A DNA stretch of 33,267 bases from Klebsormidium nitens (lineage: Eukaryota; Plantae; Klebsormidiophyceae). Below are positions 561 through 32,100 of this stretch, piece by piece. Position 1 is the first letter of the stretch; each line of letters starts with the position of its first letter. A program made the translations under genes and the position numbers. The stretch spans positions 8,467 through 41,733 of the forward strand of contig DF237672.1 in the NCBI GenBank assembly GCA_000708835.1. The letters run 5' to 3'. The notes beneath the pieces were generated by a model. That model did no database searches. It saw nothing but the letters and a program-made list of their open reading frames with translations, and had not been told where the DNA came from.

Positions 561-2115
561 CTATCTTCCCCCTCGCTTCCACTTATCCACCTGTCCTAGC
601 TTTCCATCTAGCTGGCCAAAAGCTAACTCTATGTGAGTATGCGCAACGATCTGTACAGACCCCGTTTGTCCTCGTTCGGTCCCCAACTTTGCCTTTACTG
701 ACTTTGTATGCCGTGGAATAGGGCCCGTGACAAGACCACCCGGCACGATGTAGCAGAAATCTACGTCCACGGAATTAAGCTCGGCACCGCCCAGCCAAGG
801 CTTCACGTTGCTAATATGCATTGCAGTCTGGGTCGAGCGACGATGGTCGTGCGCTGACTCCAGTGTCATCTGAACTTTCGTGAGCCGCTCCACAGCCCCT
901 GCAAAATGGCATGGATGAGCTTGGATCAAACTTAGCCCGTCTCTTCACACAACCTTGGAATTGCAGACATTGCATCCGCACGTCTTGGCATCTAGCAACT
1001 CATTGAGGACCTTGGGTAGGTAGTGACGAAGCTGCTTGAAAGTTCACGGGTCCCACAGACAGTCAATACAAACCAGCAACACTTCGGATTTCTGTCGGGC
1101 GCTTGGTGGTACCACTTGACTGTATCGACTGGTCAATGACAGCAGGTAAGGGCCATAACCAGAAGCTCGTGAATGAGTAATTACCTTGCTGGTCCTTCGG
1201 CTTTTTGAACACCAGGATGGCCATATCCATGGCAGGGTAGAACGGCGTCCGAGGCACGAAGCAAGCAATCCGTGTTTCAAGTCCGCTCTTCCGGAAGTCC
1301 TCTTGTTCGGTCAGCACAGCAGAAGCCTCTGCGTCGCGGTCGAAAAACACCAATTTGGGATGCTCCGTCTTCTCCATCTTTAGCACAGCCTTGTAGCCCT
1401 GACCATCAATGATTGCGCCGCTGGCGCAGCGCTCCGTCAGAAGCCCAGCTACCGCCGGTACCCGCTCCCCCGCAAGCTCCTGGGACAGAGCGGCCCAGAC
1501 TGCTTGGTCACTGTAAAAGACAGCCCGACCTTGAACCTGCTCCACAAAGTGGGCGATCGCTTCTCGTACTAGCGGGTACGCTGGCCGCACTTTGCGCCCT
1601 TCTACCGCTACATGCCGTAAGTCGATGTCGTTCCAGCTGGTGAGACCGAAGTCCACAAACGAGTCCGTGTAAACCATCTTCTTCATCTGGTCTATCCACT
1701 TTTTGACATCGGCTGCCCCTTTCGCCTGTACCCTCTCATAGATGCGCTGCAAACTCAAGGTGATCTGCACCACCCGCTTGCACTCCAGGAATTTCTCCCA
1801 GGCTTTCCAGTCACGCTCTTCGGCAAGCTCCATCTTTCCTGTCCGCTCACTCTCAGCCACATGCTTGCTCTTCCCCCCCAGCGCACTCGTACCTGGCTCT
1901 TCTTCCTTCAACGGTTCCAATGGCCCCACTTGAAACGCTGGACTCTGCCCAAAGACTCGATACACTGAGTAGTCCGTTGGAGGCTCTCCGTAATAGGCCT
2001 CATACCAGTCCGCCAGGCACCCTGCTACTCCCCCCAACTTCTCCATCACAAGGCGTTGGACAGCCGGGGTGGTGCACTCTGTCCCGTAGATGACATCATA
2101 GGACTTCTGCTCCTC
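561..2115 (-). CDS. Two exons (2115-1185, 898-561) encoding a helical region and a restriction-endonuclease-like (PD-(D/E)xK-derived) C-terminal domain
   Basis: FVPRTPFYPAMDMAILVF (PxxxxxPxxD) is followed after splicing by KVQMTLESAH (QxT...H), the motif spacing typical of Crinkler-type REase domains. The phase-1 intron 1184-899 (G|gtaatt ... ttttgcag|GG) joins them in frame. Confidence 0.7.
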
Positions 2116-5100
2116 CTGCACGGGGCCACGTCCGATTAGAAGTTTTTAAGGGGAAAAATCTAAGCCTGCCCTAATCTGATGGAGGTACCGCATCCCTGAC
2201 CCTGACCTCGAAGAGCTCGTTAGGAGAAGCTTAGGGACTGAGGCTGTTACTCAATCTAGCCATGAGACAACTGGCAGCATTTTCTGATAACCACTCAAGC
2301 AAGACTCCTCCTCCACCAGAACAAACGTGGACACTAAAGAGGCCCCTCTGCGCACTCATGCAGGTGTATACACCTAAACATCTACTTAGTCAAGGAAAGC
2401 ACAATCCTTACTTGAAGAAAACAAGGTCTAAATGCCCAGACTCATCTTGAGTTTGAACGTAGAGAGAGCGGTTCAGGAGATACATCAACTAAATCAGAGC
2501 GCATTCGAAAGGATATCAAAGATCTTGACTGCATACCTGACTCAAACCAGAGTGCACCGGGAACATGCTCGCCTGGGCATGTAGTGTCTCGTTTTCTGTT
2601 GTGAGCTCCTCACCCCCTGCGCTCGTCACCACTATTGTCCTGAAATGGTAAAGCCGGGCATCTAACTCCTGTTTGGCCTCCGATTCTCTTTCGAGCTCCT
2701 GGTACTGATCCAAGCAGAAGAGAATCTCCTCCTCCCTCCCGCTGAGAAATCCCTTCACGTCTCGCATCGATTCGAGGTTTGCGATGGTTTCAACAGTATT
2801 CTCTTCCCCAGAATATGCCCATGCAAGGGCCTGCTTCATCGCCTCAACTCTATCCGCCTTAAAGAAGGCACAGTCCAGGAGGGGCGCCACCCGCTGCTGC
2901 TTTGTTTCCAACGCTGCTGTGAGGTAGATGATAAGTTGCAGGAGGAGGTGTGTTTTGCCAAACCCTGCAGGCCCGTGCATGAGGATCCTCCGCCCACCGC
3001 CCGGCAGCTTCCCCTCCATAAGCTTGATCGCACGATCTACCAAACCCCTGAAATGGGAGCGCCCCATCACCGCAACTCCGAGTTTCTGCTCTGCCTTCAG
3101 CACTAGAAAACGCAAATCCCTTACACCCAAAGGTTTTGCCTGCGGCAGGATGCTCCAGCCAATCTCGAAGACGTCCTTTTCCGCTTCTCCTGCTTGCTCA
3201 AGTTCCAATTTCCTTCTTTTCACCAGACCCTTCGCAAGAACCCCAATGTCTGATGTGGCAAGGCACGTGGAACGTTTCAAGCTGGGTTTAGCGTGGCTGG
3301 ATGGATCCCCTGCAGAGCACCAAGCCTTTGGTCAGGTCGAGCTTGTCTGGAAACAGCATACTATTCAGACTTCCCTGTAGGTGCATGCTTTGGAAGATAG
3401 GTTTAAACCATGTGTATCACCTCAAGGAAACACTCGATGCAACAAGCAGCCCACAGATCGCAGACTCTATGAGGCACGTGTTCAGACTTAGCCACAATGC
3501 AGGCATTGCTTGTCAGAAGAGCGGCTTGTGGGCAGAGTCGATACCAGACAATAGCAAAAGGCAGCCACATCAGCAGAAACCCCAGAAGAGAGACAAGAGC
3601 CAGGTACTTGGAATGGTGCTGGGTTGCTAGACCTATTTTGAATTGTCGATCGTGCACAAGAAAGTAAGGCGGCAAGCGCAAGCGGCAAAGCAACCTCAAG
3701 AAGCACTCTGCAGAAACAAGTATACCGTAACGCAAGAGCACAGAAGATGAGCGGCAGAACTCACGAGTCTGGTTCCCCTTATCAGCATCCTGCCGCTCCA
3801 TATCCCTAGAGTGGCCCGCATGTGCATCCTGACTCCTCTTGACAACTGCGCAGCAGAAAGATAAGCAGATCTGGGTCTCGTGTCCATACGCTCTTGAGGC
3901 AGCAAGCAAAAGTGAAGTCCAACTGTGGAGACCCTAGCCTTTGAAAGATTGCATGAGGGTGACGGCTGACAAGCACCCTAGTGCTCATGAGTTGCACCTG
4001 GTCTGCACAGCAAACCACTTTCTAGTTAAGAGCAACACAGCTTCTGCTAGGACACACCCCATGTCTGCCATGCACTAATGTCCTTAACAAGATCGACAAA
4101 GAAGCGACTATATCACCTGGCAACACCTGCCAATCAGCAGAAGTCCCCTGTCATGCCATCTTCTCCAAGCTTCCCCGCCGCTACATGCTAAAGCACAGTA
4201 ATATACAGCTCAAGTCTCATTTACCACAACCTCTGATTTTGCTGGTCAAACAGGCTCCCCAGTAGCTAGCATACTAAATCTTACAGAGGGAATTGCTTAC
4301 TTGGAACTGCTCTGAGGAAGACACTCCAGCCATCTACCCACTCCCCTGGGCCTTCGTACTCGGCTCTCCATTGGGTCAGAAACTCCTTCCGGTCTTCACG
4401 ATCCGTTGCTTTCCAGTCTGCCACGTCGACTTCCTTCCGCATTAGGTGGTCCAGCAGCGCGGTACTAATCTTCTTTTCCGGAAAAGCTTCCCGCCAACCT
4501 TGTGCAATCTGTGGTAGGAAGACATTGAAGATCAGCACAACAATGAGCAGCCCGCTCTTTGATAGCATGGACACTGTGAAGAGACACGAAGTTGCTGCCT
4601 GATGCTCGAGTCCTCAACTGCAGGATTTCCCCTGTCCAGGCTCACCTCCTCTGCAGTAGGTCCCGGGTTGCGTTCGACTCCGCCAATCATGAGGAGCGTC
4701 GCTGCATGGGAGGACGCCACGTTCAGATGCTACATGTGCGCCGCGCTGGCCTCGTCCAACAGCAATCAGCAGTTTCCAAACAAGACATATCAGATACATC
4801 GTAGAAGCCCAAGTGCTTTACACATGTTTGCATGTTCAAAGGAAGGCCACCTGCTTCACAAGCGGACTGCAGATCCAAAGCTGCTATTGCAATGCCTTAC
4901 CTATGAGCGACTGGCTCATGGGTGTCGAAGCCCAAACCCCCTTCCTCTGGAATCCTTTCCAAGCTGCAGGCGGAAACAGTAGAATTTTTCTTGCAGTCAC
5001 TATTGAGTCGTGTGTCCATGCCAGCAGAAGGAGCCATAACGCATTAGCGGCATTACCGGGGACTTGCTGCCCTTGATTTGTGTACAAGAGAACAACCAAC

Positions 5101-6303
5101 CAGTTGAGTCAGATTGCGCCAAACACTCACTTGATGTCGGTTTTGCAGTGAACGAGGCCCCTCCAAGTCCCCGCAGCTCTGCTTCCAATGTCCTCTCCTG
5201 TGCTCTCAGGCGGCGCATCTCTCGGTCCTCTGCCCATGCTGCAGGAGCATGCAGAGCAGGTAAATTTCTCGACAGTCTTTCTAAAGGCTCATCGCTGACC
5301 AATGGGAGAGCAGCTATGAGCGTTGCATGAGATTTAGACCATGTCAATAGCAGGCTCCCCAAATGCTCTCACCTGCGCGGTCTCGGTCGACTCGAAAGCA
5401 ACCACATGACGTGGCGTGCGCTCTGCACGTGTACTTGACGCTGCCCCCCTCCTTGCCTCCCCTCAGCCCAAACTCTGCAATGGCGCCACAAGCTTGGCAG
5501 TGAAGACTGTGCAAGTCTGCAATGAAGAAGTGCATAGGTTGGGTATTGCACCTGGACTCAAACTTGGAGATGCAAGCAAGACTTAGTGCGTGCACCTGCT
5601 TTTGCAGTCATGTCTCTTTCGCAGTGGGTTGGAGGTTTGTGATTGCCAACATGTACCAAGAATTGGCCTTTTATACTCTAAAGAGAAAGAGGCTGATCTT
5701 GGTACCCCGCAAGGACGGCCATACCCGCTAAGACTCCTCAAGGACTTTGTACTTGACAGCACGTACCAATAATCAGGCTTTTATACTCTAAAGAGAAAAA
5801 GGCTGTTCTGGTACACCCCACCCATCACAGAAAAGACGCTCTTCTTGGTACATCACTGCAGGCGCACCCTTCACTTTTCTGATGGACGCTAAAGTTGCAG
5901 CGCACCGCGTCCCAGCTTCTGCCTGGCCCCTGCTTGACAAGTCAAAACACTCCACCTAGAAGCACATGCACCAGAACTCACCTCTTTCTGCGGCTTTGCC
6001 AAGCGTTTTCCCAAGGCGCTCATTTGCTTTCTTCTTTCCACTTCCAGACGCTTTGCAAGACCCGCGCTGTGCTGACCCACAAGCAGTCCATGCCTCTTTC
6101 TTCCGACCACTGGACTTCTGGCTTCTTCGTTTCTGAGGGGCATCTTGAACATCGCACTCAGCGTTCACAGCAGCAATGCGCGCCTCCTGCTGCTCAGCGC
6201 TGATGCTAATCCGCTCCCTGTACTCAGCAGCTTGCTCGTACCGAGCTGCCTGACACACCCGGTGATCAGACTTGGACCGGCCATGAGGCCGGCCTCTTGC
6301 CAT
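561..6303 (-). CDS. Crinkler/RHS-type effector-like protein (basic N-terminal region - 2A-like peptide - SAM-like header - P-loop NTPase - REase-like nuclease); 10 coding exons, about 973 aa
   Basis: Hand-built exons (minus): 6303-5982, 5474-5373, 5238-5131, 4963-4901, 4701-4646, 4508-4301, 3845-3765, 3249-2537, 2115-1185, 898-561. All introns are GT..AG and intron phases (1,1,1,1,0,1,1,0,1) match at every junction, giving 2922 nt of open frame ending in TAG. The ATG at 6303 has a good context (ATC ATG G). The last three exons are best supported; the first four are less certain. Confidence 0.7.
2537..3249 (-). CDS. Exon encoding the P-loop NTPase domain (CR-NTPase-like) of the gene above
   Basis: Walker A RRILMHGPAGFGKTHLL (2974-2951) and Walker B-like EEILFCLDQY in the 2516..3280 ORF. 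Acceptor ccacatcag at 3250, donor CAG|gtatgc at 2536. Confidence 0.85.
4658..4701 (-). other. 2A/StopGo-like ribosomal skipping motif (A)TLLMIGGVERNPG|P
   Basis: GGC GGA GTC GAA CGC AAC CCG GGA CCT at 4684-4658 matches (V/I)ExNPGP, with G instead of the canonical D and a hydrophobic run upstream. It lies in a 56-nt exon (tcctcccatgcag| ... GAG|gtgagc) that is in frame with the NTPase-REase exons. Confidence 0.7.
5650..5819. repeat. Two-copy direct repeat (about 58 bp, period about 110 bp) in an intron
   Basis: cttttatactctaaagagaaa(g/a)aggctg at 5668-5695 and 5778-5805, with similar flanks (gtaccaa...). Confidence 0.85.
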
Positions 6304-8155
6304 GATGACAAAATTCAAGAACCAGCTTTCCGGCACCTGCAAGGTCAAGAGGTAGGTAACTAAAGAGTGAATCACTAGTTTCTCTCAACGAACATTCGCA
6401 GGCACCACTTCTGATGCATTTGCAATTCCACTGCGTATGCAACTCCATCAGTGCGCACTCATGAAGAATCAGGGGTTGTTTCCCTTCAGCGCGCACTCAT
6501 GAAGAATAAGAGGAACAACCCCTAAAATCACAACTAGATTGCTCAGTTGCGTACTTGGCAACTTCCATATGCTGTGTCATCCTGATGCCTTTGAAGGCTG
6601 CTCATAACAGGCCAAGAGCAAAAGTGACCTGATAACTATAAAAACAGCATGCAGTTTTGGCATAACCAGCGCCACGCTTATGATGGTTTCTAGAGCTCTC
6701 AGAGGGTCTTGATAGCGCTGCGCGCCTTTTCCAAATGCTGAAGATTGTGGCAAGGGCCACCCGATTCCACAGACTTACGTCTTCTTAGATCAGACAGAAG
6801 CGGCAGAGCCAATCTATGCCTGACACACTATTCTAAAGTACAAGAGCATCTAGAGGCAACCAGGGAGCAACTTACCTCTTCTACAACATTCTCAGGAGCA
6901 CCTCAGGGATGCGCCAACACAGCAGCCCAACAAAATGCCTCCCTCCTGTTCATATCAATTGCCGGCCAACCTGAAAACGGTGAGCCACACCAACCTGCCC
7001 TGCAGCCCGCCCGCTCTTAGCTCTGTCAGCCCACAACAGGAGGCCTAAACCTATAGGGAAGCCGCTACGCGCTCAGAAAAAGAGCCAGGAAAGAGAGTGA
7101 GCTGGAACTTCCGACTTCCTGAATGGGAACGGGCTGTGACTACTTGGTAACGGCATGGCCTGAGCCCCTACGACAAGCAAAGGACCATTGCCGAGCGTTT
7201 GACAAACGGGAGGGTCCGGCAGATACTTGACCCTGATATAGGCGGCTGGATGGCTCCATAGCCTATGAGGTGGCTGTCCGCACACCAAGTGTGCCATCGA
7301 CGGTCCGAGAAGACTTGGCAGTGCCCCCACGGAATTCGACGGCATAGTGAATTCCGCGGCATTGCGTTATTGCGTGACCCCCGCCGAATCCAGCAACCGC
7401 GCCGCTCCGCGCGCCAGTCTACCATAAGTCTGAAACGTTATATGGGAACTTTTCTCCATTTTCCTGTACGTTTTATCGTCGAACGTCGGGCATTCGAGCA
7501 AGGTCGAAGAACCTCGATTGCCAGGGCCGCGTCGCGGCGTCGTACAGTGCCGAAATCGGCGAACCCTATGTCTCCCCAAGCCAATATACGGTAGGTAGGT
7601 GCCAATTGTATATATCCAGCGTAGAAAAGCAATTGTCCGCTTTAGCGGCGCATACATATGATAATAATACTACTAGTCAGAGTCATGTGACAGTGTGCTA
7701 CATATACAGTGCATGTGCATGGTCCAAAACAGTTGTTACGCGATGCACAGCCTCGATGTCGTGTAGCTAGCCGGCAGAAGGCCCCAGTTCGTTTTAGAAC
7801 CACTCGCAAAAAGAGGGCGAGTGAGACTTTGAGGCGGCAATCCCGCTGTACTAAGATCCTGGCGAACTTACATGCAATGAGAATCCAAGCGTCATCACAT
7901 AAGCAGCCGCATGCAGTTCGTACAACTTTGCATGACAAGGTATGATATAGAAAGTCAGCCACGTCGACTAGCTGAGCGACGATTGCATGCCGGATGCACT
8001 AAGCTAGCATTACCTATGCACACTGTTGTTAAGATGGTCGATCATACTAATTGACAATGAAGCAGGGCATCAACCTGACCATCGAGGTGCCAATCAAATT
8101 TTAAATGTACATCAACGCTGAGCCAAGATGGAGAGCCGTTCCCTTCTTCGACGAC

Positions 8156-11100
8156 TCATCTAGGCACCTTGCGGCTCAACACCCTTGCCGGTCTTTTGTC
8201 GGTCACGCTATATGTACCCCTTTCTCCAGAGGCCAAGATAATCCGACCCCACTGCCATTGCTTATCTTCGAGCTCTTGCAACAATCGTTCTACGTCGCGC
8301 TCGGCCCGCCGCCGGCTCTCTCTCAATGCGTCCGACTCGCACTCGACCTGCATGCTCGTCTCAACTTCCTGACCAGCTGCGCTTGCATGTATACTTCCTT
8401 TCCTCTTGTGCGGGTTGTTTCCTAGTAATACATTTTGCTTTTGGCTGGTGCTTTCCACCGGCCGCCCAGACCCGCTTGCCTCCTCGGCCATGAGCGACCG
8501 GTAATGGCACGCCTGGAGGACCCCAGTGATGACGTCGGTGGCTTCCGCGTCCTCACGGAGGGACAGGACAATGTCGGGCTGCACGTAACAACAACAGAGA
8601 GTCAGCTCTAGCCTTGATTTCAAAAGTCTTACTGGTCCAATAAATCTTCGCATCAGGCCGATTTCAATAAAACGGCAAGGAACGAGGTCTAGATGCTAAG
8701 CGGTTGACTGCCTTCGACCACGCACAGCCTGAGCATACCAGGAGGTTGCTCTCTTTTCAAGCGCCACTTCTCTGCTTCTTTTCGCTTGTCCACTGATCGT
8801 GTCGGTTGGGATGCTGAACCCACACATATCATGAATGAGAAAGCTCAGAAAACCAATCAGAAAGACTAACAGCCCCGGAAATTTTCCATATTGAAGGGTC
8901 TGAACGGGGAATGCTTTATTTGTTCCACCGTTCCAAGAATCTATTAGAACCACTGAGGTCGAACGAGAATGTAAGCAAGATCCCTTCGATCTCGTCGTCC
9001 TATCCACGCCACAACGTGCCGCACTAAGTCGCAAACATACTCACCTTTCTGTGGGTGAACGGCAGCCGTCCCCGCCCCTTTCTCCGGGGCTGTATCAAGT
9101 ACTTCTGACTTCGATGCCGCTCCAGCAACTCCCCCAGCCCCTCAACGCTCGCGGCCGCTTTCCGCAGGGGGAGGATGCGCAGGGGGAGTGCGCCGTTATG
9201 GATAGGCGTCGGCAGGAGCAGGTTTTCGGCGTCGCTGACTTGCTTCTGGTCGGGGACGCTTCCCGTGCGCAGCCAGTGGTCCACGATGATCTCTGTGCGC
9301 TCCTGAGACGAGAGAAAAAATCAACTTCGTCAAAAGGCAGAATCGGACAGTCAAAGTCTGCAGCAAAGAAAGCCGTCTGAATCGAGTCCGACACAACCTT
9401 CAAGGAAGGAAGCAATCACACAACAAATAAAGAGAGATGGAAAGGGAGCGGAAAAGAGAGGAAGGACAACGAAGAGGGGGACTGGGTGAGAGACAGAAGA
9501 GCGCTACGTACAGGAACCCACAAGACTGGAAAATGAGTCATTTGACGATACCAAATTCTGGAAACGATTGAAAAGAATGTCTCTTTTATCGGAATTTGAA
9601 ACAGATCCCATCAAAGTTCACGTACCTTATTGAGCGTGCGCAGGTGCACTGACTTGAGCTCCTGCCGGATGGCGAACAGGTCCATGGCAGCAATGACGGG
9701 GAACGTGACCAGCGGGATGAGCGACCGCATCTTCTCGTTCTGCCCGCACGCCGAGCTCAGCCCGACAGCGATGGCAAGCCCGATGTTGTCGGCAACCACC
9801 GTTTGAGCCTGCACAAAAAGATATGCGAACGGTTCTTGCTTCGATTCGGCACGATATTTTGTACGCAAGTCGACAAACAGATTGCAAAGAGGCCAACTCT
9901 CAGTCCAGACCCCTCGTCTTGAGTATAGTCCCCTTGTAAACTGAGGGAAAAAACGTAAGAGATCGAGGCAGTGCTCGTGAAGCAGTCCGGTCGCAATACG
10001 GCCCGACGACGCTGAAGTGCCCGTCCGTCCATTGTAACGTGGCAAAGGGACCCTACACTATCAGCGGCAGCTGGCGCGCAGTCCTTTCTTTCAAGCTTCA
10101 GATCGAACGCAGAAAAACCTTTCCTTTGTTCAGTTTTTCTTTTCTTACTCTACTCTGTTGAAAAATTTTCCTGGCCGCAACCACCGCGGTAAGACCCTGA
10201 GGCCTGCGTTTGCCCTCGAGAACAACTTCGTCGACCGCTCTTTGAACTCCGATCCGATGAAGCCGTGTGTCAGAATGACTCCAGGCCTTTCAGCCTGGGT
10301 CAGCTGGCAAAGTGCAGCAACACTTTTTGCCTCGAGCACGGGATATTGAACCGAACGGAACAGAACAGAAAGGAACGTAAAACGGCCGCTATCTCACCTA
10401 ACCCCTGGCAACAATGTCTGCGAGGTTTCCTCCAAAGCGACGCTCTTGAGTCAGCTTGTGCTCTCCGTTCCCTTTTTCTCGCCAGGCCCTTGACCGAGAT
10501 GTCTACAAAGTTTTCCACCAGCGCAAAGCTCTTGCGGATGCTGAGGCTCGTAGAGACGACGACTGAAACTTTGAACAGGAAGGAACCAATCGAACGAAAC
10601 AGCCGTTGGTCTCACCTGGCCTTTGGCGGAGATGTCTGCGAGGTTGTCCCCCAGTGCGAGGCTTTTGTGAATGCTGGGGCTCGTGGAGACGACGTGCAAA
10701 ACATCGAACAGAGCGGAACCAAATTGAACGGAACAGACGAATGCAACGGAACAGCCGTTCCCTCACTGGCCCTCGGCCGAGGTGTCTGCGAGGTTCTCCC
10801 CCAGCGCAAAGCTCTTGGTGCTAGGGCTCGAGGAGACGCCGCGCGGAAGATTGGACGGAACGGGAACAAACGGAACGGAACGGAACACAAACCAAAAACC
10901 TTTTTCTCTCACCTGACCCTTGGCGGAGATGTGTGCGAGGTTTTCCCCCAGAGCAACGCTTTTGTAGATGCTGGGGCTCGTGGAGACGACGCACAGAACG
11001 AAGACAAACAGAACGAAACGGAATACAAGGAGGAAAACCTTTCGTCTCACCTGACCCTTGGCGGAAATGTCTGCGAGGTTTTCCCCCAAGGCAAAGCTCT

Positions 11101-15234: not shown

Positions 15235-18200
15235 GTCAAGAGGCGCTTTGAAGTTCACCTCCCAGTGTCTCAGAAGAGGCACCGGCCGAACGAGGCAGAG
15301 GAGCCCCAGCAAAACCCCCTTCAAGCCTGGCTGACCAAGAGAAAGACCGCGCCCGGTTTGGAAGCCATCCTTTCTGAGGCACGGAAGGAGAACCCGGTAG
15401 TTGTAGGTAAGAATAGGGTCAATGAGGAACTAGACGCGGGGCCAAGCTCCCGCACTCTTCAGCGGCCGCCTCCAGTGAGTGTTGCAGCCCAATCCAGCAG
15501 GACTCTTCCAATCACAGCTAGCCTGCGTCAAACTTCTGAGTTCAGTGCGAAGAACGGCAGGGGCAATGGAGAGGGGGGGGGATTGACCCAGGAGGCGGGG
15601 AAGGGTTTGCAAAGACAAACCGTGGAAGGACAGACGAATGGAGGCATGAGGGGTAGCCACGTACAAAACGACGGAGCTCTGAGAAAGTCGGAGGGCGATG
15701 ACACGCAGGCGGGCACGGCAAAGAAGAAGAAAAGGCGTAAACGGGCATCGGTGGTTTGCAAAGCGGTTACCACGCTGGTTAGCGGCCAGCCGAAGGCTTC
15801 CGTTAGTAAGCTGAAGACGGGTTCTCCCGTTGGGGGCAAAAAAAAGCCCCCACTTCTGGGGGGATGCAAGGGGGGGACTGTTGGTAAAAATGGGGGCCAA
15901 ATGGGGGAGCCTGCGGTAAAACCCATAGTCAACCCCAAACCTCCTCAGGTTGGGAAGTCCACAAAACCCGTAGCCCCAAGAGATACGAACCGCCTGTCCA
16001 GAGATCGGGCCAACGGCGGGACTGGTTCCAGCTACGCGATTGGAGGGCCCGCTGACGTCAGCACGAGGTCGGCCCCGGAAGCCGCCGAGCGGCCGCTTCC
16101 TTACGAAACACGGGGACCAAGGGAGGGGAAAGCACCTCAGCCATTGGTAAACCATAGCGTTAACCAAGGGTTAGGAAACGGGTTAACCGGAGGTGGAAAC
16201 GCACAACCCGGTGTGGCTGCGCCTCAGAAGGCCCCGTCAAAGAGCGGTTGGGACGTACCAGGCCCACTCCCAGGCATGGGGTTCGTGCCAAACCCCCCAC
16301 AAGGGCCCTGGAATTCCGAAATGCCAGGGGCTTTTCACACTGGGTTTCAACCTGGGTTTCCACCAGATGTTCCCAGGGAGAATGCGTTCACGGACGGCCC
16401 TGGGCCAGTGGGAGAGTACGGTGTGAACTGGCCCGGGCAAGCGGGACATCGGTCGATGCAAGCGCGGGAGTGCCAGCAATTGTGGGAGACGCTGCAACGG
16501 TCGATGCAAACATGGCACAGGTATGGATGTTTTCAACATCGTTTTCGAAAGCTCCTGATTCAGCGACATGGTCGGACTCTGCAGGTTAAGGTCATTGCCA
16601 TGTTGATGGCCCACTAGTCGGATCTTGTATGCGGAATTCAGTAATGGATGCCAAACGAGATGCGGAAGCTCAGAAGCCGATTTTTTACGAAAGCTGGTTG
16701 TTTCTAGCGGTTTACGAGTCTGCAAGTCCTGGTAGGTAGAGAGCTGAGCACTTTTCGGCCCGAGGATGAATGTGTCCGTTGCTACCAGTTTTTGCTTCTA
16801 TCATCCGTCGAAAGCGACGTCGTCCCCCTGAAATTTGATGATTGTAATCAAAAGCTGAGGGCTTACTGTTGGATCAGAGCTTCCACTCTTGTCAGCCTAC
16901 TGAGTTGTTGATTGTGACGCGCGCAATGTCAAGATGCACACGACTTGTCGTCTCTGCGATTAGGACCGCTTAAGCTTCTGAGCGTCTTAATTTGCTTCTG
17001 TGGTTCTCAACACAATCGGGGAGAACGGAAGCAGGATTTCATCACGTTCTTCTTGTATGCTGCGCTCTGAATCCCGAAACACTTCCATTTAAGCTTGACC
17101 TTCTATTTCAGCCTGTTACTAGCGATTCATTCCATCGGTATGCAGGCACCATGATATTTTTGCGTCCATCTCCTCGTAACTTGTACTCGTTTCTTCCACC
17201 ACTATAGCATGTCTTCTTTGCGCGTTGCCAGCGTGTTGCTCAAAGGACCACGCAGCACGCGACGTCTTTCAATGAGAGACGCGCTGATCTCTTTCTTTGC
17301 CTTCATCCTCCATCACCAGCTTGTACTTAGTAGAGACGCCTCGTAGCAAAATTTCGATCTGCACTTATTTCTGTCTCTTCCTCCAGCCTGTTGCATCGAC
17401 GGGACATGTTTTGCGATCTGGACAAAGTTCACCTTCTCTGTCCGTTGTTTACCAGCTTGCTTGAAAAGGGTGACATCTCCGCGCATTAGAATCTGTTTCT
17501 CCTAATACCGTTTCCAGCATGTCGCTACACGAGACCGGAACGCGTTCGGGGAATAGAGAGACCTCATTTTCACCAGCTTGACCCCAAAACAGACTCCTTC
17601 TGTTTCATCAGATTACACCTTACCCGACTCTTCAGAAGGGCGTAGGCCATGCATGGACACCCCAAGGCCATCTACGGTGGTGGGGGCCCGGATTGGCCGA
17701 AGTTGCAATCTGGTCCGTACATAAAAGTCTCGGATGCACGGAGTGTGCATTTTCGGAGGTTTGAAATCGGACGCCCACTTTAAGACTCGATACCATTTCT
17801 CTCCTGCATCTCGCCACAACGGTTGCTGCAACGGGACCTCATCTTCACCAGCTTGGACCCCAGAACAGACTCCTTCTGCTTTTAGCAGATTACACTCTTT
17901 CCAACTCATAAGACTCGATACCATTTCTCTTCTGCACAGCGTGTTGCTCCAACGGGATACCGACGCTGCCCAGCGAAGCGCCCACCTGCGACAGCAGACC
18001 GCGGCGTCGAAGCTGGCCCAGGAGACCGCTGCGGAGCAACTAGCGGTGGCGAGAAAACTCAAGCATGCGGCCGAGGAGATCTGCGAGGCGGCCGTGGAGG
18101 AGCGGCGCAGTGCCGCAGCGGCGGTGAGGGTACGAGTGAAGCTGTCAGTGGGGAATGTTTGGAGGACGATTGATCCGGATGATGCAATGACTGTACGACG

Positions 18201-29132: not shown

Positions 29133-32100
29133 CTATATTGTGACGGAATCGACCAAACGAGCTCCCCTGTAAGACATGATGTACAGCCCCATGTAGTGCG
29201 TCGGTCCCTGCAACAGGACAGAGAGGCGCGTGAGAAAGCGAACCGCAGATATTCGGAAAAGCGACTGGTATACATGGCTCTAAGGCCTCTGTGATTTGCC
29301 GATGGCTGCCGGAAGAAGTGGAGTTGCTTTCGAAAGATAGGGCACGAGAGTTCTGGCAAACAGCCACCAACCCCTTCAGAAGAGACAAACTCTCTTTGAA
29401 TCGTGCTAAAGGAATAGGGATATTCTCTCCGAAAGGGAGAAGAGTCAAAGATAGGGCTATTGCCGCAGTACTGCTAGCTACGCGAACGGCGACCCTGAAA
29501 GCGCGGGGCCTGACAATTGCAAGGTTCACGGCAATAGCCCTCGCGACCCACGGCAAACTGGGAAAAACCAATGTTCGTACGTAGACGCTGGTTGAGAGCG
29601 CCCGCTGTTAAGCAACGATGCGCTTGTTGTGCACCGAAGACTCCGTTCGGACGCATCTAGAAGAAGTGACGGACACGATATACATTTGTCAAAAGGAGCC
29701 CAGTGCGACCCGCGCATCAGTGTGCCCCGTCGGATTTGGCTTCGACAACGGAAGCTACAACAGCAACTCAATAGAGAGGACGCAAACGACAACCGAAAAG
29801 GAAAACTTGAAAGCATTATCACTCACTTGCGGATGTGCGGAGTACGGGCTCTTCCCGTTCTTCTTGACTTCTTCGAGGGGCATATCAGAAGTGGCGCAGC
29901 CGTCGGCGTAGACGTAGACCTCGGAGAGGGGGGGGATCATCTTGTGGTTACGCGCGGAGAGGGCGCTGACGACAAAGTCGAGCACGCAGACGTCAGTGCA
30001 CGTGCCCACCACCAGAATCTGCGCAGGAGAGACTGAATCGAGTGACTTGGCGTCTCGTGACGCCTTCGGCGGATGTAGCGTCTTGGGGAGAAACTTTCCG
30101 CACGCCCTCGAAGAAATTTTCTGTTTCTGTTGGGCGTACTTATTGTGTCACGTCGAAGGGCAAAATTCCTGGAAGAAAGTGGGAGGGGGAAGAAGTTGTC
30201 GTGAACAAGAAGGATCAACAGAAACAACGAGAGCATCCGCCCAACAAATTGAGAGATACTTTTACTTGTTTCGTCGTAGCAAGGAAGCAACAGCAGAAGA
30301 CACAGCATCGTGAATGTGGGGTTGATATTCATTTGTCTAGAACGTGACGTACTGAGTGACAAAGAAGAGAAGCGAAGGAGAACGAGACTCGCAGAATCTC
30401 GTTCCGCTTCAGCGTAGCAAGGAACGGGAAACGTCAGAGTTCGCTGTAGTTTTCGTAAGTGGGAAAGGCAATGACACCGTCCTGCTGAAAGGGGAATGAG
30501 CGGAAGCTGCGACGTGGCCAGACGACGACAACGAACAAAGCGGCGATGGGAAAGCAACAATTACGGCCGAAATTTCACCAGGAACGTTCGGAAGGTTCTC
30601 ATGTTGCTTCTCAAACAGCTAACCTGTGCGAACCTTCATAATCGAAGTACTCACGATTTTCTCCATTATTTTCGCAAAGCCTTTCCCAAAAAGCAAATCA
30701 ATGCACATTCCGAAAAGAGCTTCCAGGAACTCACATGCTCAACCTTGTTCTCTGCAACCCAGTCCACGAACCCGTTCGACCGGTCCTTTCGGAACGCCCC
30801 CACAAAACCGTCCGCGCAGTCCTTGTAGATCTTGACGCATTTCTCGGTGTTGTCCAGCCATCGCAGTTTCTGCACGAGTAAAGCCATCCAATGTCAGTCT
30901 CGGGCTGCTTGGAGGCCCCGTGTCACATAAAGACGGCAGTATTGGTCCCATTCTTTCGCGCCCTTGAAACTTGAAAGACTTACCAACAAAAGCTGGGCGA
31001 GCTACGGCGCTGTGTAATCTGCAAAAGAAAGCGCTGCGTTTGGAAACGCGCCAGTCGAATCGACACGTGTGTTCTGTTTGCAGGGCCGTGAAGGCCACGG
31101 GGGTGACCGCTCGGTGTCGTGCCCGATGGTGATCTCGTGACTGCTCAGGTGACGTCAGCATCCTCGACATCCAACACCCTTAGTACCACTACTGGCCTCT
31201 GACCTAAAGTTGACATCGTTGAGCCCTTGACTGCGACTGACAAGAGACGGCTATCGAAGCCACCGCCAAAAAGTGCATCACTTTATCCTGATGATTCGAG
31301 TCGCTTTCCTCCTTTCACATAGCAGGAAGCATTTGAAAAGCTTTGTCAAAAAGCATCAAGCGACGGCACGAGGTCTGTAACCACCAGCGTTTGACCCAAA
31401 CTTGACCGGCAATGGATCAGAAAACAGAAACCAAAACCTACCGGCACAAAATCCTCCTCTCCGCTTCCCCGCTCGCAGTGCTTTGACCAGGGCGGTTCTG
31501 ACACCCCCATTTCGTGCAGGTCCATGAACGCCAAGACTGGCCAACCCCGGTCCAAGAACTGCCGCGCTAGCCTGTCTGTTTCATCAATCATCCTGTCAAT
31601 CTGCTGGCTGGGGCGAAGGGGTGCCTGGGGAATGAGGGAAGATAAGGGTTGAAGATGACCGCCAGTTTCGAGGATACAATTGCCACTGTAGCTGGAGTGC
31701 ACTTGGTTTTTTCTGATTGTAAGATCCGGATTGATATTGTGGGTGTTTTCCTACTCCCTTTCTTCTGAGTCTAAGTTTATGGGGGGCATTCTGTGATGAC
31801 ATTGAGGCTGTTCAGGCTCTGCGCTTCATTGCAGAATCAGAAACTTTAACAACAAAGGCTTTCAGTTGCAAGAGCGAAGGCCTCGATCAAAGCGTTGAGA
31901 AAAGTATCTCCAACTTCAGCGCAGAGACCGTTGACACTGGTCCACGACCGTTTGAGGATGACCGCTTGCTGAGAGGAGCGAGCTGACTGCAGGCAGGTGT
32001 TGCAGACTAGTTTCCGTAAAGCCCAAACTTTCTTCGAGGCGCTTTGACTCTTTGCAACATTTTTGGAAAACTGATCAAGGACAGGACCTCCTTTGATCTT

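Follow-up and report, generated by a model that had tools for sequence, protein, structure and literature searches.

The stretch of Klebsormidium nitens DNA analysed here (33,267 nucleotides of contig DF237672.1, hereafter the window) carries on its minus strand an expressed, intron-rich gene in which two adjacent small exons of 63 and 56 nucleotides (nt) encode a candidate StopGo/2A peptide, referred to as the leader. The gene comprises 11 exons, one 5' non-coding and ten coding, and the RNA-supported model encodes 1007 amino acids (aa). A preliminary description of the locus, made from the sequence alone, had noticed an NPGP peptide between positions 4646 and 4963 and had assigned a SAM-like header domain, an NTPase and a restriction endonuclease (REase) domain of a Crinkler-type effector to the coding sequence behind it.

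Gene structure, splicing and expression

RNA-derived contigs of four runs from four studies were aligned to positions 1000-6900 of the window. The joints 4701 to 4901 and 4508 to 4646, which the preliminary description had proposed as a check of its model, were present with GT..AG ends in the contigs of all four runs, and the same was true for the joints 2114 to 2536, 3308 to 3764, 3845 to 4301 and 4963 to 5131. The joint 5238 to 5373 was found in two runs, and the joints 5516 to 5982 and 6334 to 6874 were found in two or three runs, the latter in three of the four. The depth in intron bins was zero and, therefore, the contigs come from spliced RNA; no variant letters were listed for the leader exons. 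Loose contig ends at 1184 mapped to 868-897, which placed one more GT..AG intron at 1184-899 and the last exon at 898-561, and the final spliced junction is identical to that of K. nitens GAQ86377.1, which is 89% identical over exon 10 and among the best named relatives. The last intron and the final exon had been missing from the preliminary model, the two tested junctions of which were recovered. Translation of the spliced model gave an uninterrupted frame of 1007 codons over the ten coding exons with the start ATG at 6303-6301, and an in-frame stop is located upstream of this first ATG. The spliced contigs and the open frame show that the 56-nt exon is indeed transcribed in the frame of the peptide.

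Contigs of low depth (4-8, versus 95-364 for spliced contigs) read unspliced through the intron that separates the 56-nt exon from the header exon (window 4484-4658), which suggests a small amount of pre-mRNA or retained intron. In exon 10 (window 1388-2100, minus strand), several very deep contigs contain 8-13 differences and, therefore, paralogues or alleles with a nearly identical C-terminal module are expressed, too.

Table 1 Features of the gene in the window, in the order of transcription
Feature	Position	Strand	Evidence
5' non-coding exon	6874..6990	minus	joint 6334 to 6874; 6990 is not a mapped transcript end
Exon with start codon; basic N-terminal part of the upstream product, aa 1-108	5982..6334	minus	joint 5516 to 5982; homologues
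Cys/His-motif exon, aa 108-156	5373..5516	minus	translation
Charged, probably coiled-coil segment, aa 156-192	5131..5238	minus	joints 4963 to 5131 and 5238 to 5373; translation
63-nt exon; 3' half WASTPMSQSLI, conserved upstream context of the StopGo peptide	4901..4963	minus	joints, four runs
56-nt exon, (A)TLLMIGGVERNPGPTAEE; predicted skipped bond Gly226-Pro227	4646..4701	minus	joints, four runs; published core
Five-helix SAM-like domain exon, first downstream domain, begins IAQGWREAF	4301..4508	minus	AlphaFold2 model
Short linker exon	3764..3845	minus	joints 3308 to 3764 and 3845 to 4301, four runs
NACHT-like (STAND) P-loop NTPase exon, Walker A GPAGFGKT	2536..3308	minus	Pfam
Acidic linker, winged-helix domain and start of the C-terminal domain	1185..2114	minus	joint 2114 to 2536; model of paralogue P0002
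Last exon, stop codon 563-561; completes the C-terminal domain	561..898	minus	intron 1184-899

The StopGo/2A peptide and its conservation

The peptide ending in NPGP was seen in the joint translation of the two minus-strand exons. Exons 4963-4901 and 4701-4646 together encode ...WASTPMSQSLIATLLMIGGVERNPG, followed by PTAEE; taken singly, 4646-4699 translates to TLLMIGGVERNPGPTAEE and 4902-4961 of the preceding exon to WKGFQRKGVWASTPMSQSLI. The core GVERNPGP is in frame (aa 220-227) and matches the published core (D/G/C/N)(V/I)ExNPGP, a redefinition drawn from ~2,500 viral octapeptides in which G and D are equally common at position 12 (p12; Li et al. 2026, PMC12846837), so that the earlier worry about Gly in place of the canonical Asp is outdated. 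SLIATLLMIG precedes the core and forms an L-rich upstream context ending in G-G; StopGo peptides with leucine-rich upstream motifs that have (A/G/S)G as their end at p12 have been described as a class (PMC12846837). The codons at the skip site are GGA for Gly (4663-4661) and CCT for Pro (4660-4658), and the coding sequence on both sides of the peptide lies in one open frame of the spliced mRNA. The spliced model predicts the skip site at G226/P227 and products of 226 aa upstream and 781 aa downstream; the length of 973 aa, the site at 212/213 and the products of 212 and 761 aa of the preliminary model are superseded. Its placement of the break ahead of the header domain was right, since the skip site lies 4 residues before the exon for this first downstream domain.

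The ExNPGP pattern occurs once in the DNA of the 33 kb window versus 0.04 occurrences expected, and the longer pattern LLxxGG(V/I)ExNPGP was found once in the window and in 0 of 100 shuffles; together with the selection on the peptide described below, these counts rule out a chance occurrence. Two further NPGP-coding sites in the window, at 17684-17694 and 31543-31553, lie in another frame or behind a stop codon and were, therefore, dismissed as chance. When metagenome contigs were scanned for LLxxGG(V/I)ExNPG with the next codon left free, Pro followed in 102 of 120 matches. The string ATLLMIGGVELNPGP recurs in unrelated metagenome contigs, and RNA-virus contigs of the PNAS data set (PMC12846837 supplement) contain LLMIGG(V/I)ExNPGP. 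These sequence comparisons support the motif as a genuine member of the L-rich StopGo/2A class. A large family of metagenome contigs (L026, L058, L098, L106, L107 and others) contains ...A(V/T)(I/L)ATLL(M/V)IGGVELNPGPVDNIVQVLCSGC..., and the last 15 residues before its skip site match the algal leader almost exactly.

A close relative of the peptide has been assayed in a reporter. Supplementary file 7 of Snell and Matreyek (bioRxiv, 16 July 2026, 10.64898/2026.06.17.732966) lists K. nitens GAQ93188.1 (KFL_013500020), the 20-mer of which (SQLLIATLLNIGGVEPNPGP, residues 208-228) is classed there as 'skipping' in human cells, and gives 'Floricaula/leafy' and 'AAA+ ATPase' as its Foldseek labels. 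This 20-mer is identical to the window peptide in 17 of 20 residues. By eye, GAQ93188.1 resembles the window gene in having a Cys/His motif, a coiled coil, ...KGVWASMPMSQLLIATLLNIGGVEPNPGP and then a LEAFY/SAM-like domain, but it is encoded at another locus, has another N-terminus, and its annotated model ends soon after the header. The exact peptide of the window was not found among the supplementary entries listed, and the preprint contains no discussion of gene structure, splicing, the family or the payload. In the same entries, LLVIIILLLMIGGVETNPGP, a peptide ending in LLMIGGVETNPGP, is classed as skipping as well.

For an analysis of conservation, six related cassettes were compared, i.e. 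that of the window and five recovered from public contigs (L006, ATLLMIGGIETNPGP; L133, AIQLKIGGVESNPGP; L002, VTLLLRGGVESNPGA; L132, VTLLMIGDIKGNPGP; L131, EKLLMIGGVERNPES). The pair of 63- and 56-nt exons is kept in four loci (window, L006, L002 and L131), and three of the six cassettes keep an intact core. Between the window and L006, the C-terminal modules of which are only 30-45% identical, the 26 codons W...NPGP have a non-synonymous rate (dN) of 0.11 and a synonymous rate (dS) of 0.98 (dN/dS 0.12), and changes in the core are limited to V to I and the free x position. In contrast, dN/dS is ~1 in the nine preceding codons and the four following codons are unrelated. Therefore, strong selection is indicated on the peptide itself, and this purifying selection extends over a length that matches the exit tunnel and ends at the predicted skip site. 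The two other cassette pairs gave dN/dS values of 0.16 and 0.35 for the same 26 codons. The conservation of ExNPGP in paralogues, which had been suggested as a check, is thus seen in the selection (dN/dS 0.12-0.35) but not in the three of six cassettes that lost a critical residue.

We consider it likely that both small exons together specify a leucine-rich StopGo/2A peptide of 26 residues and that this peptide separates two proteins. The nascent ...LLMIGGVERNPG in the exit tunnel would block formation of the Gly226-Pro227 bond, and the 226-aa upstream protein, basic, with Cys/His motif and coiled coil and retaining the 2A tail, would be released. Translation would then resume at Pro227 to give a separate 781-aa protein in which a SAM-like domain is followed by a NACHT-like NTPase, a winged helix and a C-terminal domain, and one spliced mRNA would yield two proteins in a fixed ratio. 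We infer that skipping takes place in Klebsormidium with some efficiency and that the two products cooperate; they might, for instance, be a regulator and an oligomerising NTPase effector with a role in conflict or immunity.

Several observations weigh against this explanation. Three of the six cassettes are altered at a critical residue (p14, p18 or p19) while the remaining leader is kept, namely L002 with NPGA (P19A), L132 with GDIKGNPGP (E14K) and L131 with NPES (G18E together with P19S); either the three copies are in decay or the leader serves a further purpose. The cassette introns are ~70% conserved, too, and, therefore, the conservation is due in part to the cassette having spread recently; the dN/dS contrast, however, does not rest on such a spread. 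According to the supplementary entries of Snell and Matreyek, LLVIITVLLMIGGIESNPGP did not skip and gave less protein, and skipping was lost when D was mutated to G in another peptide, indicating that peptides with G at p12 depend on context. The same table labels some bacterial peptides without NPGP as 'skipping'; therefore, its classes contain errors and single entries need care. Finally, the case for skipping in the alga is built on sequence and on the reporter result of a paralogue.

The main rival explanation is attenuation or read-through. The leader would then mainly be a brake, as in the 'reduction' or 'falloff' classes: its leucine-rich helix and NPGP would hold up ribosomes, so that less of a potentially harmful NTPase protein is made. 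Alternatively, the product would stay fused as a 1007-aa protein, with little or no separate downstream product. Many eukaryotic 2A-like peptides cut protein abundance or fail to restart and a close peptide ending in LLMIGGIESNPGP is 'nonskipping, reduced protein' in the available data of Snell and Matreyek, and the retention of the remaining leader in the paralogues with NPGA, E14K or NPES would also fit a brake. However, the closest relative listed in that screen, which is from K. nitens, is classed as skipping, the residues for skipping including NPGP are preserved by selection in three divergent cassettes, and the downstream frame is long, intact and expressed; on balance, we regard attenuation or read-through as unlikely. 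The leader could also be an inactive relic that was copied from a retroelement or virus, was spread by duplication and persists in young copies. This would agree with cassette introns that are ~70% identical between loci with far more diverged payloads, with the damage at key residues in half of the sampled cassettes and with the occurrence of the same 15-mer in unrelated elements, but a core dS of ~1, which is near saturation, next to a dN of 0.11 and neutral flanks in the same exon is unlike a young neutral copy, and a relic appears very unlikely to us.

The leader-cassette introns of the window (4509-4645 and 4702-4900, minus strand) are ~70% identical to those of L006 and L002, versus only 30-65% for the payload proteins, and share long blocks near the acceptor sites; L006 has lost the acceptor for the SAM-like exon. 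These comparisons suggest that the spread of the cassette is younger than the divergence of the payloads. In L006 (1020-1075) the 63-nt leader exon has a tandem duplication around its splice donor, with TCCTAGGTAAGGCACTTC occurring twice, 27 nt apart, and the second donor, if used, would introduce an in-frame stop. L131 (8100-10400) contains a copy of the N-terminal exon on the plus strand (10001-10264), and exons 3-7 with the damaged leader (NPES) adjoin on the minus strand (9347-8125), which is a head-to-head or rearranged arrangement.

The two predicted products

The upstream 226 residues consist of a basic N-terminal part, a Cys/His motif, a charged helical segment and the leader. Twelve homologues with 54-84% identity were found for the basic N-terminal part. 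The Cys/His motif, C-x2-C-x22-C-x2-H, is conserved in L132 and, by eye, in GAQ93188.1, and judged from this pattern its exon probably encodes a small zinc-binding module; it had no Pfam match, and an Atlas search gave only weak leads of the zinc-ribbon type (score 0.90, low recognition). The N-terminal protein is reused together with the leader in paralogues: in L132, homologous N-terminal exons and the leader are in one frame, with GT-AG introns at matching positions. These data also bear on a start of translation at Met206 (MSQSLI...), which would put the 2A peptide at the N-terminus, where sea-urchin NLR genes have it, and would make the 205 codons before it a separate or untranslated region. 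A Met is present at or near this position in five of the six cassettes and most eukaryotic 2A-like peptides are located near the N-terminus (PMC12338488), but the 205 codons are open over four spliced exons and in frame with the leader, and the upstream exons are conserved at the protein level in the 12 homologues and are in frame with the leader in L132 and in the annotated GAQ93188.1. We give a start at Met206 hardly any weight.

The separate downstream protein expected from skipping at Pro227 would begin with the header. Its exon (4508-4301) was modelled as a five-helix bundle, with an AlphaFold2 confidence (pLDDT) of only 73.5 in a model from 3 sequences. The best structural match was the SAM domain of LEAFY (4ude_B; TM 0.72, Z 7.9, root-mean-square deviation 2.2 Å, 67 of 69 residues), followed by the SAM domains of ASK3, CASKIN2, tankyrase, p73 and BICC1 (Z 3.6-4.6), in agreement with the SAM-like header of the preliminary description. 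The oligomerisation domain of LEAFY, a streptophyte transcription factor, leads the matches clearly (Z 7.9 versus 4.6 for the next), and this modelled likeness may reflect either homology or only a shared fold. The NTPase, too, was confirmed: Pfam NACHT (PF05729) matched with 28.7 bits versus a cut-off of 26.7 (E 1.4e-6), and AAA_16 and nSTAND_NTPase5 matched as well. The winged helix was recognised in the model of paralogue P0002, in which residues 25-110 match 3h92 (Z 8.4) and also Can2, Cdn1 and the winged-helix domain (WHD) of NLR proteins; against the WHD regions of NLRC4, NRC2 and Avs3 the Z values were 5-5.5. C-terminal sensor repeats (LRR, TPR, WD40) were not detected, with no Pfam repeat family in exons 10-11 or P0002. 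For the REase domain there was no Pfam or PDB profile match, and Foldseek and VIA-align gave nothing convincing; the AlphaFold pLDDT does not reach 50 in the final ~115 residues, and NotI was found only at a Foldseek E of 0.25. The description of the downstream product as a SAM-NTPase is, thus, supported, whereas the REase domain and the label 'Crinkler-type effector', with no sequence match and a poor model at this place, could not be confirmed.

Protein searches for full-length relatives returned only 11 fragmentary matches for exon 10, one for the header and none for the leader open reading frame (ORF); the databases contain mostly exon-sized fragments of this gene family. The paralogues of the NTPase module in L004 and L127 have no leader within 8-10 kb upstream and, therefore, the payload also exists without a leader or the leader is located farther away. 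Conversely, no NTPase module was found after the leader in L132 or L133, and their payloads had no Pfam match apart from a Herpes_ori_bp-like ORF in L133. This ORF (L133, 14341-14820; Herpes_ori_bp-type helicase, E 2.4e-8) lies 6.6 kb downstream of the intact leader, and its membership in the same gene is not established. It is conceivable, and we put this forward tentatively, that a conserved head, i.e. the basic Cys/His protein plus StopGo on the 63- and 56-nt exon pair, is reused before different payloads as a two-protein module. Just as speculatively, these payloads might include SAM-NTPase proteins and other headers, which would make the family an exon-shuffled bicistronic StopGo system of the plant lineage.

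Significance and comparison with known systems

StopGo is widely seen as a device of viruses and retroelements and works in plant cells; to our knowledge, no plant virus is known to use it. Cellular genes have been stated to use it "never or only rarely" (PMC12846837), and green-algal retrotransposons carry 2A-like peptides according to the available part of Snell and Matreyek. Among the papers searched, none names both '2A-like' and Klebsormidium in its main text, the link being present only in the supplementary table. The peptide family is, thus, already catalogued and one paralogue is reporter-tested; the window gene is not a first, and the novelty claimed for it in the preliminary description was too strong because a paralogue from K. 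nitens that shares leader and header was already listed as 'skipping'. The value of the gene is tempered, since the peptide of its sister gene is part of a public reporter data set. What is added here is an RNA-validated gene structure, the two-exon cassette, the signature of selection over tunnel length, and the full SAM-NACHT-winged-helix payload with its conserved upstream partner. An expressed, intron-rich gene family of a streptophyte alga keeps a StopGo peptide under selection between a small conserved protein and an NLR-like NTPase, and this makes it a tractable natural case for asking why a cell uses skipping where two genes would do, and whether the upstream protein acts as a regulator of the downstream NTPase.

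With Crinkler (CR) effectors, as described by Zhang et al. 2016 (summarised in PMC5289972), the gene shares the order of header, P-loop NTPase, helix-turn-helix and a further C-terminal domain. Unlike in Crinklers, the header is SAM-like and not ubiquitin-like, an REase fold and catalytic residues are not demonstrated, there is no sign of secretion or host delivery, and the alga is free-living. With the class A or L-rich StopGo peptides of viruses and retroelements (PMC12846837; Rao et al. 2025, PMC12338488; Odon et al. 2013, PMC3708506) it shares G(V/I)ExNPGP after a Leu-rich segment, but here the peptide is split over two spliceosomal exons of an intron-rich nuclear gene in a streptophyte alga, with no reverse transcriptase or capsid nearby. 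SpNLR2A of the sea urchin (Roulston et al. 2016, PMC4981915) also has StopGo in cellular, non-transposon genes and in an expanded NACHT NTPase family. There, a 26-aa peptide with Asp at p12 forms the very N-terminus and also serves as a signal peptide (PMC4981915), whereas the peptide of the window gene is located internally behind a conserved protein of 200 aa, carries Gly at p12 and contains a hydrophobic run that is too short for a membrane span. Despite these differences, the parallel with the sea-urchin NLR genes suggests, by analogy, a recurrent link between StopGo and expanded NACHT families.

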